Assembly (NCBI GenBank): GCA_020137815.1
Contig: CM035360.1
Location: 7,192,001 to 7,256,000 of the forward strand
DNA: 64,000 bases
Source: Hormiphora californensis
Taxonomy: Eukaryota > Animalia > Ctenophora
Direction: 5' to 3'
The translations under genes were made by a program, and so were the position numbers. Positions 28,831-30,406 of the stretch are shown in pieces. The first letter of the stretch is position 1; every line of letters begins with the position of its first letter. Under the pieces are notes generated by a model, which searched no databases, was not told where the DNA came from, and saw only the letters and a list, made by a program, of their open reading frames with translations.

Positions 28831-28989
28831 GTGTGTGTGTGTGTGTGTGTGTGTGTGTGTGTGTGTGTGTGTGTGTGTGTGTGTGTGTGTGTGTGTGTGT
28901 GTGTGTGTGTGTGTGTGTGTGTGTGTGTGTGTGTGTGTGTGTGTGTGTGTGTGTGTGTGTGTGTGTGTGTGTGTGTGTGTGTGTGTGTG
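28831..28989. repeat. (GT)n microsatellite, left flank of the ORF1-only element
   Basis: Pure dinucleotide run. Confidence 0.97.
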
Positions 28990-30318
28990 ACACGGTTTGA
29001 CACGGTTTTGACACGGTTTTAACATAATCTGGCCACATGTCTCCATGGGCGTGCAGATTGGAGGATAGCACTAATATATGAGTGCTATCCTCCGTGTGCA
29101 AATTTATAAAACACACTCCTGGTTAGATAATAAATATCAAGTAGATGCCGGGATTAATCCTAGAAATTACCAGGTGGACACTTAATAAATCGAAAATCCT
29201 AACTATCAGTGGGGCCATTGCACAAAAACTGTATAACCCCTCTCTTCAGTTCGAACTGTCTCTCAGGGTTATCTCTTCTAAGTTTTTCAAGTGTCTGTAG
29301 ATTCTCTCTTCTCTCTCGTCTCTCCTCAATAGTCCGATCTGGACAGAGATACACTCTGCTGTAGATTTCACTGCTTCTCAGCTGTCGGGCCTTCCTCAGT
29401 AGAGTCAGAAGACTATCTCTAGACTCCAAGGTAACCCTGATGGGCCGGGTTTTACCTTCAGCGGCGGTTCCAAGTCTACAAGATGATGATATAGGAGGCT
29501 TCTCGTCGAGCTCCTCAAAAACAGTAAGTGCACGATCAGTAACTGTCTCGTTCTCCTCCTCTGGCAGGCCAAAAACAATAAGGTTCTTAGCTCTGCTATC
29601 TTCTTTGGGGGGCTGCGGTGTGCGGAGAGCCGCCCCAATCTTCCTCGGTGCAGTTGCTGCTGCACAGTTTTGTGCCACTACAGCAGACCAAGAATTAAGG
29701 TATCTCTGTACAGTCTCAGTTACAGATCTCACAGATTTCAATTCCTCGCTCTGCATGTCGATAATCTGCTTCTGGAGCTGATTTACCTCTCGCTGGCATT
29801 TCAACAGTTCATCTTTCAGTGAGGTCATTTCCTCTGTCATTGATGAGTTGGCTGACATAAAACTTTCCTCAGCCTCAGCAGCCTCAACATGGACCTCTTT
29901 TCCTTTCTTGTTACTAACAGCGTCATTGTACAAGCGGAACAGTACTTTATGAAAAAGGAGGTAATAGCACTTCCCCAGGGCACGTCTCATCTCCTCCTCA
30001 CTCATTTCCTTAATCTCGGAGTCACGGGTTCTGCCAATCACTAGACCCTTGCGGGCCTTCCTATACAGAATACGTACGGTATCCCAGTTGTTGTCATCCT
30101 CGTCTGCGTCATCAAGTCTTAGTACCTGTGCCAACTCTGCAATGTCATGGCAAATGTGTCTGGCCGCTATTTTGTGCAAATCAATCGTTAGATGTTGTCC
30201 ACTCCGCATAAGTAGCTCGTCATTAGAGCGGTTGCTCATCACGGTGCGTGTACAAAGGTGACAAGGTCGCAGGCAGTTAGGTGGGAGAGCAGCAACCAAA
30301 TACAAATGTTAGGAAGTA
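28990..30318 (-). mobile_element. ORF1-only non-LTR-like element embedded in (CA)n
   Basis: ~80-bp 5' UTR, one intact ORF, ~210-bp 3' UTR ending in three aaaccgtgtca-type repeats, (CA)n on both sides, no RT or endonuclease. Confidence 0.75.
29199..30239 (-). CDS. LINE ORF1p-like protein (coiled coil + RRM/CTD), 346 aa from the first ATG
   Basis: Heptad segment LKDELLKCQREVNQLQKQIIDMQ followed by RAKNLIVFGLPEE...RLG...RPIRVTL...LLRKARQLR...VYLCPDRTIEERRER, a motif order typical of CR1/L2-type ORF1p. Confidence 0.85.
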   Translation of the reverse strand: MSNRSNDELLMRSGQHLTIDLHKIAARHICHDIAELAQVLRLDDADEDDNNWDTVRILYRKARKGLVIGRTRDSEIKEMSEEEMRRALGKCYYLLFHKVLFRLYNDAVSNKKGKEVHVEAAEAEESFMSANSSMTEEMTSLKDELLKCQREVNQLQKQIIDMQSEELKSVRSVTETVQRYLNSWSAVVAQNCAAATAPRKIGAALRTPQPPKEDSRAKNLIVFGLPEEENETVTDRALTVFEELDEKPPISSSCRLGTAAEGKTRPIRVTLESRDSLLTLLRKARQLRSSEIYSRVYLCPDRTIEERRERRENLQTLEKLRRDNPERQFELKRGVIQFLCNGPTDS

Positions 30319-30406
30319 GTGTGTGTGTGTGTGTGTGTGTGTGTGTGTGTGTGTGTGTGTGTGTGTGTGTGTGTGTGTGTGTGTGTGTGTGTGTGTGTGT
30401 GTGTGT
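30319..30406. repeat. (GT)n microsatellite, right flank of the ORF1-only element
   Basis: Pure dinucleotide run. Confidence 0.97.

Follow-up and report, generated by a model that had tools for sequence, protein, structure and literature searches.

How does a 1.3-kb unit that encodes one protein, and neither a reverse transcriptase (RT) nor an endonuclease, come to stand intact inside a dinucleotide microsatellite? The question is raised by a 64,000-nt stretch of the genome of the ctenophore Hormiphora californensis (assembly GCA_020137815.1, contig CM035360.1, positions 7,192,001 to 7,256,000), here called the window, which holds such a unit between two (CA)n tracts. We consider it likely that this element belongs to a young non-autonomous retroposon family derived from long interspersed nuclear elements (LINEs), encoding only a protein of the ORF1p type (the product of the first LINE open reading frame, ORF) and mobilised in trans by the ORF2 proteins (ORF2p) of LINE families of the same genome that we term Y and Z.

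The element occupies 1329 bp of the minus strand, window 28990-30318, between pure (CA)n tracts. On the plus strand the sequence and Tandem Repeats Finder (TRF) give (GT)79.5 at 28831-28989 and (GT)44 at 30319-30406, which in the sense of the element are a 3'-flanking (CA)79 target microsatellite (28831-28988) and a 5'-flanking (CA)44 target microsatellite (30319-30406). The single long ORF of the unit (29199-30239) runs from an ATG at 30239 to a stop codon at 29199-29201 and encodes 346 aa; every other sense-strand ORF in the 1329 bp is shorter than 100 aa. It is preceded by a 5' untranslated region (UTR) of 79 nt (30240-30318, starting TACTTCCTAACATTTG) and followed by a 3' UTR of ~178 nt, which ends in three tail units of the form AAA(A)CCGTGTC (28989-29020; AAAACCGTGTC AAAACCGTGTC AAACCGTGTC, also written (AAACCGTGTC)3), and the last GTGTC joins ACACAC directly. 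Pfam detected no RT or endonuclease in the element, and a second gene would not fit. The initial annotation had described just such a 1.33-kb unit between (CA)n tracts, with an intact 346-aa ORF, short UTRs, a tail running into (CA)n and no RT or endonuclease, and sequence, TRF and Pfam agree with it on all these points; only its 5' and 3' labels have to be exchanged relative to window coordinates, the element being on the minus strand. The first 27 nt of the element occur eight times genome-wide, seven times at listed family copies and an eighth time at C3:1056098; with so few occurrences, a host spliced leader at the head of the element was rejected for this family. In five other full-length copies a CTTC separates (CA)n from the element start, and the window copy may therefore lack ~3 nt at its 5' end.

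A search of the window's own 110.7-Mb genome recovered at least 10 near-full copies at 94-100% nucleotide identity, on eight contigs, together with fragments. All copies are 1.30-1.35 kb long and start at element positions 1-46, and these small 5' truncations (0-45 nt) are of the kind that LINE-type copying would typically be expected to leave. On the 5' side, 9 of 11 copies have (CA)n 0-4 nt away, and on the 3' side (CA)n starts directly past the tail in 8 of the 11; wherever it is present it has the sense orientation. Since (CA/TG)n of at least six units makes up only 0.4% of the window, or 0.04% when the two tracts flanking the element are set aside, the association is not due to chance, and insertion is targeted and orientation-specific. 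A two-unit pattern of the tail matched 75 times, at ~47 genomic loci, against zero matches for the reversed control; beyond the loci already covered, 20 of ~36 tail loci were read. Of the ~35 distinct tails inspected, at least 24 run on into sense-oriented (CA)n, whereas (TG)n comes after none of them. 

One copy, at locus L004 (C12:4.636 Mb), lies outside (CA)n, inside a tandem repeat that has a unit of up to ~190 bp and is rich in CCCAC/CACAC. Two further loci, L014 and L016, were considered as old copies on account of their 71-75% identity and rejected: L014/L025 (C10:7.98 Mb) and L016 (C2:7.77 Mb) resemble uncorrected long-read assembly with many homopolymer indels, L016 contains a run of N, and because of this noise the low identity is to be read as an artefact and not as age.

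The family also appears elsewhere in public data. Contigs of a second species carry it at 93-97% identity, with one of the two 3' junctions described below (variant B) and with the tail beside (TG)n. A marine metatranscriptome yielded five contigs at 90-99% identity, which record presence in an RNA library and are not proof of transcription, and public proteins 83-96% identical to the ORF product come from contigs of 1.3-3.3 kb. Two metagenome scans, by two alignments, returned no related loci.

The ORF is under purifying selection. It is intact in 10 of 10 near-full copies, and both indels among the copies are in frame. The ratio of nonsynonymous to synonymous divergence (dN/dS) is 0.15-0.37, pairwise between three subfamilies, and the corresponding ratio of polymorphisms (pN/pS) is 0.29 for substitutions common to at least two copies (Fisher p = 1e-6) and 0.36 for private ones. 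Within subfamilies the ORFs differ by ~1% or less (dS 0.004-0.018), which points to recent activity of the family. The young, (CA)n-targeting family supposed in the initial annotation is thus borne out by several copies of unit length that share their ends in (CA)n, and the copy count and dN/dS that it had proposed to determine fall in with it.

What kind of protein has been maintained? Pfam returned only noise for the ORF (E >= 0.03), the type II ORF1p family (Transposase_22, PF02994) staying unmatched, and the L1 ORF1p sequences in PDB were missed both by phmmer with the ORF and by a 72-sequence profile. A protein atlas search with the ORF gave only ctenophore clusters (score 0.81), which serve as leads only; at E <= 1e-3 a profile of nine homologues reached 10,151 cluster representatives, almost all with lengths of 160-400 aa, and the two homologues with a named source are both from the ctenophore Pleurobrachia bachei. 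The AlphaFold2 model (mf035693e922c, on a 72-sequence alignment) has a mean predicted local distance difference test (pLDDT) of 83.7. It lays out an N-terminal helical part, a long predicted helix at residues 81-192 (window 29664-29999), which is a putative coiled coil, an RNA recognition motif (RRM) at residues 219-300 with the order b1-a1-b2-b3-a2-b4, and a helix and beta-hairpin at residues 304-339 that resemble the C-terminal domain (CTD) of ORF1p. The pLDDT of the helix is 81-98 over residues 81-180, falling to 69 at 181-190, and that of the RRM and CTD-like region (residues 219-339, window 29223-29585) is 94-98. 

Foldseek against PDB placed human L1 ORF1p chains at ranks 1-10 and 12, with E values of 1e-5 to 2e-3. 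The trimer entries 2ykp, 2yko and 2ykq matched at E 1e-5 to 4e-4 over 190-214 aligned columns, the coiled-coil part included; the RRM-CTD entry 2ldy matched at E 2e-4 and the RRM entry 2w7a with a TMt of 0.64, and generic RRMs ranked after these. The likeness to L1 ORF1p is one of fold only, at 15-19% identity. By the model, the ORF product is a predicted type II ORF1p, with coiled coil, RRM and CTD in that order. The initial annotation had called it a CR1/L2-type ORF1p; the LINE ORF1p-like fold holds, and the restriction to CR1/L2 has to be dropped because type II ORF1p has been reported from L1, CR1, L2 and R1 lineages alike (PMC4120745).

Where, then, might the missing enzymes come from? 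Among the tail loci we found three related autonomous LINE families, X, Y and Z, all of which carry the tail of the element and most of whose copies are located in (CA)n. Their ORF2 proteins have 1100-1250 aa, combine an apurinic/apyrimidinic-type endonuclease (APE) with an RT, are 47-59% identical to one another, and are hit by the Pfams RVT_1 (E 1e-31 to 1e-35), Exo_endo_phos and Exo_endo_phos_2. A search of the 3' 200 bp for an autonomous partner with APE/RT had been suggested as a check in the initial annotation, and such partners are present, sharing the 3' tail and terminal hairpin. The X copies L035, L039 and L050 show 100% identity to one another, and so do three copies of Y, from which it follows that these two lineages were active recently. 

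The ORF1s of these LINEs are of another type. X ORF1 hits Lipase_GDSL_2 at E 7e-7 and 30.3 bits, under the Pfam gathering score of 32.9, and matches PDB 4c1b ('ORF1-encoded protein') at E 7e-6, an entry that we take to be the esterase of zebrafish L2 (ZfL2-1). The ORF1 of Y was read in L021; it matches that of X with 33% identity (E 4e-31) and reaches the esterase motifs. Identity to the esterase part of X ORF1 is likewise 33% for a region upstream of ORF2 in Z, although this region is not one open frame in the copy read. By sequence the X and Y ORF1s are esterase-type (SGNH/GDSL, type IV), and likeness to X ORF1 suggests the same for Z. The combination of an APE+RT ORF2, an esterase ORF1 and a 3' hairpin with a repeat tail in place of poly(A) suggests that X, Y and Z are CR1-group-like LINEs; their database homologues bear no clade names. 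In family X (L039:3181-3183; also L035 and L050) ORF1 and ORF2 are in the same frame with one TAA between them, and the first ATG of ORF2 lies 15 codons downstream; read-through or reinitiation at this junction is possible.

Tail-sharing elements can stand head to tail in one (CA)n tract: Y then X, Z then Y, or a LINE tail then an ORF1-only copy. Examples are L002:1244-1275, L008 (three tails), L039:1489-1519 followed by 1882-7047, and L021:1640-1660 followed by 1730 onward. Such (CA)n tracts serve as repeated landing pads.

The closest ties between the element and these LINEs are found at the 3' ends. Two alternative 3' modules join the common body at element position 1181, that is, at window 29138, so placed that the first 61 nt of the 3' UTR (29138-29198) are common to both variants in the alignment of copies. 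Variant A, a module of 147 nt in the window (28990-29137), is found in L001-L003 only (the window copy, L002 and L003) and is common to family Z, being 82-84% identical to the last ~170 nt of Z (L036, L037). In variant B (L004-L011) the match to the window element stops at position 1181, and the final 75 nt of Y are matched at ~95% identity. Each of the five 3' ends folds into a long stem-loop 1, a stem-loop 2, ~10 nt and the tail. In the window, stem-loop 1 (29060-29093) has a perfect 13-bp stem, GGAGGAUAGCACU/AGUGCUAUCCUCC, which is also present in Z (L037) with a larger loop, and stem-loop 2 (29026-29059) is the terminal hairpin, by its fold and its identity to Z a putative RT recognition element. 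Stem-loop 2 of variant A with a 5-nt linker (39 nt) recurs without a mismatch in five distinct Z-family loci, including L018/L037, L019, L020/L036 and L021, and the 33-nt hairpin of variant B has an exact match in Y copies.

Four of the five 3' ends fold more stably than every shuffled sequence (z -3.1 to -8.4; the last 141 nt of the window element have z = -5.0), and the Y end folds like its shuffles (z -1.4). When A/Z is aligned with B/Y, the 12 pairs are 97.7% paired, with five compensatory pair changes and slid controls at no more than 43%, a count that took its structure from single-sequence folds of the same sequences and so favours that structure. RNAalifold on a MAFFT alignment that included X was tried and set aside: it gave a poor consensus, with the X hairpin in another register, and the pairs were for that reason counted on the A/Z/B/Y alignment. 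The junction suggests that the 3' module has been swapped at least once, at element position 1181, and through this exchange the family could use two partner lineages. Overall, the element is a chimera in which a type II ORF1 is joined to 3' ends borrowed from esterase-type LINEs.

The window family is one of several. Relatives of the ORF number at least 118 scored among 600 candidates, nearly all of them intact frames of 320-375 aa. Five further copies that were read (L026, L027, L030, L040 and L047) represent four families, all ORF1-only, ~1.2 kb long and with short UTRs: L030:1231-2459 (minus strand), L026 together with L027, L040 at ~5669-6652 (minus strand) and L047:2144-3103 (minus strand). 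Their sole ORF has 312-328 aa where intact and is 29-51% identical to the window ORF; L026/L027 keep 156 aa. Three copies, L030, L040 and L047, are flanked on both sides by (TC)n or TC-rich tracts; in L026 and L027, (TC)n is found upstream only, with just a brief run of TC behind the tail. The tails of these four families are short repeats unlike those of the (CA)n family. The L030 family has ~18 near end-to-end copies among 37 matches, at 69-100% identity.

These observations suggest the following course of events. The RNA of the element would end in the two-hairpin 3' structure and a (AAACCGUGUC)n tail, and the ORF2 protein of Y or Z, with its APE and RT, would recognise this RNA in trans by its terminal hairpin and tail. 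Within a (CA)n/(TG)n microsatellite the (TG)n strand would then be nicked and reverse transcription primed at the nick, probably aided by pairing of the RNA 3' end, ...GUGUC(ACAC), with the nicked (TG)n strand. If it is copied by the ORF2p of its partners in this way, the element would inherit their (CA)n target and their orientation, and the specificity would be set by the partner protein. The ORF1p itself, held by selection, would presumably bind and protect the element's own RNA in cis.

Several points weigh against this account of a family mobilised in trans. The partners' ORF1 is of another type, and the ORF1p of the element may not cooperate with partner ORF2p. The loci read contained no autonomous LINE that has a homologous type II ORF1. 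The five compensatory changes in the hairpins stem from two lineages only. Specificity for (CA)n is strong but not absolute, since 3 of 11 copies and ~10 of 35 tails lack a (CA)n behind them, and target-site duplications are unreadable within a microsatellite.

Other explanations of the same data deserve weighing. The most far-reaching is that the genome harbours a guild of protein-coding 'satellite' retroposons, in which hundreds of intact type II units, all ORF1-only, make up several families that each keep to one microsatellite, (CA)n or (TC)n, swap LINE 3' modules and thereby change partners, and form a two-component system with esterase LINEs, the chaperone being encoded on one mobile element and RT and endonuclease on another; taken in this full extent, we regard the idea as doubtful. 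Its last part can also be put forward by itself, as a mutualism in which the ORF1-only element contributes an RRM-type chaperone, X, Y and Z contribute RT and endonuclease, and each side depends on the other, by analogy with HeT-A/TART at Drosophila telomeres. Such a mutualism would make sense of the complementary ORF1 types, RRM-CTD in the element and esterase in X and Y (and by likeness in Z), of the joint and often head-to-tail occupation of the same (CA)n tracts, and of the many intact type II ORF1 loci among the scored candidates. However, esterase-type LINEs such as ZfL2-1 are regarded as autonomous elsewhere, X, Y and Z give no sign of needing the ORF1-only protein, and plain parasitism would fit the same data, so that we hold mutual dependence to be improbable.

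A further possibility is that the element is a recent internal-deletion derivative of a LINE with the same ORF1, a true 'half-LINE' like HAL1, whose parent lies outside the sample. This would have precedent in other animals, where full-length CR1 and L2 elements carry type II ORF1 (PMC4120745), and the sampling covered 20 of the ~36 extra tail loci and 67 scored of the 1166 RT-like candidates in the genome. The LINEs that share the tail, however, do not look like parents. The window ORF shows no similarity to X ORF1 (E 0.5), all three LINE families have esterase-type ORF1s dissimilar to it, and a derivation of the element by deletion from X, Y or Z was rejected because their ORF1s are unrelated to its ORF; the element is therefore no 'half' of its partners. 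Nor do the 3' ends or the relatives favour a single parent: the two 3' modules trace to two different LINE lineages, the four other sampled families with the same ORF1 type (five copies) are ORF1-only as well, and among the matches listed, which are partial lists, none to ORF1 lies just upstream of one to ORF2. With these observations the half-LINE reading becomes very hard to sustain. At one locus, L034:2862-3341, a type II ORF1 fragment 34% identical to the window ORF lies directly upstream of an RT region, in an old, stop-ridden Y-like LINE copy; this fragment could be either a nested insertion or a template-switch chimera.

Finally, the ORF might be a domesticated host gene family derived from an ORF1, with mRNAs that were passively retro-copied, for which its intactness under purifying selection and the mammalian precedent of the domesticated ORF1 L1TD1 (PMC4161310) could be cited, or the structure might be an assembly misjoin between (CA)n tracts; yet every copy has a LINE 3' hairpin and tail and no poly(A), 5' ends are shared precisely, insertion into (CA)n is orientation-specific, the copies form three subfamilies of near-identical members, and ten independent loci have the same structure, which excludes the misjoin and leaves this pair of explanations with next to no credibility. 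In the terms of the initial annotation, the element is not single-copy and its other copies, too, are without ORF2.

We return to a non-autonomous family mobilised in trans, and ask how it compares with known systems. ORF1-only non-autonomous LINEs have been described before, namely HAL1, HeT-A and Ag-Sponge (PMC5786205). HAL1 of mammals (Bao and Jurka 2010, as reported in PMC5786205), with which the initial annotation had compared the element, is likewise, in that account, a non-autonomous LINE derivative whose coiled coil-RRM-CTD ORF1 stands alone and which depends on a LINE ORF2p. As portrayed there, HAL1 is an L1 minus its ORF2; it shares the ORF1 of its partner, ends in poly(A) and has no target specificity, whereas the present element has an ORF1 unrelated to those of its partners, a hairpin with a 10-11-nt repeat tail, two interchangeable 3' modules and a specificity for (CA)n. 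It shows neither the origin within the L1 clade by loss of ORF2 nor the poly(A) 3' end of HAL1 proper. The comparison therefore stands for an ORF1-only family and falls for a 'half' of the partner, the partners carrying an esterase ORF1.

HeT-A, of the Jockey clade (PMC5786205), resembles the element in having only an ORF1 (Gag), a defined target and an RT supplied by elements that share its sites; it differs in adding to chromosome ends, in its type I (CCHC) Gag, and in lacking a microsatellite target and a shared 3' hairpin module. Ag-Sponge of Anopheles gambiae, of the CR1 clade (Biedler and Tu 2003, as reported in PMC5786205), is there described as ORF1-only, non-autonomous and of the CR1 group, like the element; its host is an insect, and the account in PMC5786205 cites neither microsatellite targeting nor 3' module exchange for it. 

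Targeting of microsatellites by LINEs also has precedents. Of the LINEs concerned, Kibi and Koshi are Tx1-group elements, Dong is one of the R1 clade, and Togen has a restriction-like endonuclease. As listed in PMC3812793, Mino and Waldo of the R1 clade use (AC)n and (ACAY)n, Kibi uses (TC)n, Koshi (TTC)n and Dong (TAA)n, and Togen, a NeSL-related LINE, is specific for (TG)n (PMC4640811). Orientation-specific insertion into dinucleotides is thus shared with these LINEs, (AC)n/(TG)n and (TC)n both being known targets. They are autonomous, in contrast to the present element, and the (CA)n LINEs found here have an esterase ORF1 and a repeat tail, both features of the CR1 group.

The pair UnaL2/UnaSINE1 is reportedly a LINE and a short interspersed nuclear element (SINE) of the stringent type. 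It resembles our case in that the LINE and the non-autonomous member have their 3' stem-loop and short repeat tail in common. The principle of such pairs is that the RT of the partner recognises the shared 3' end (PMC5786205, PMC3747384), and by analogy the shared 3' ends described here look like the pattern of 'stringent' LINE/SINE partnerships. SINEs differ in being non-coding and transcribed by RNA polymerase III, whereas the element is 1.3 kb long and encodes a conserved protein.

What is new is, first, the combination of ORF1-only coding with (CA)n targeting, and an ORF1 class unlike that of the partners; second, two exchangeable 3' modules matched to two partners, and CR1-group-like LINEs on (CA)n; and third, the scale on which ORF1-only families occur in a ctenophore. 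Only a few LINE derivatives are ORF1-only, and the best known of them has its ORF1 from the partner itself. The system could thus serve as a natural test bed for the need for ORF1p in cis or in trans, for the evolution of stringent 3' recognition and for the microsatellite specificity of APE-type LINEs. For annotation, at least 118 and perhaps ~600 intact ORFs of 320-375 aa are probably genes of mobile elements and not of the host, and are likely to be annotated as orphan host genes.

Two further features of the window may be mentioned. Just past the 5' (CA)n and an (AT)12 tract, at 30477-30665, lies a foldback of ~180 bp resembling a miniature inverted-repeat transposable element, with arms of ~45 bp (AAATGACTGGGACTGTTC ... 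GAACAGTCCCAGTCATTT). At 2599-4187, on the minus strand, there is a degraded RT fragment whose identity to the X, Y and Z ORF2s is 30-37%.

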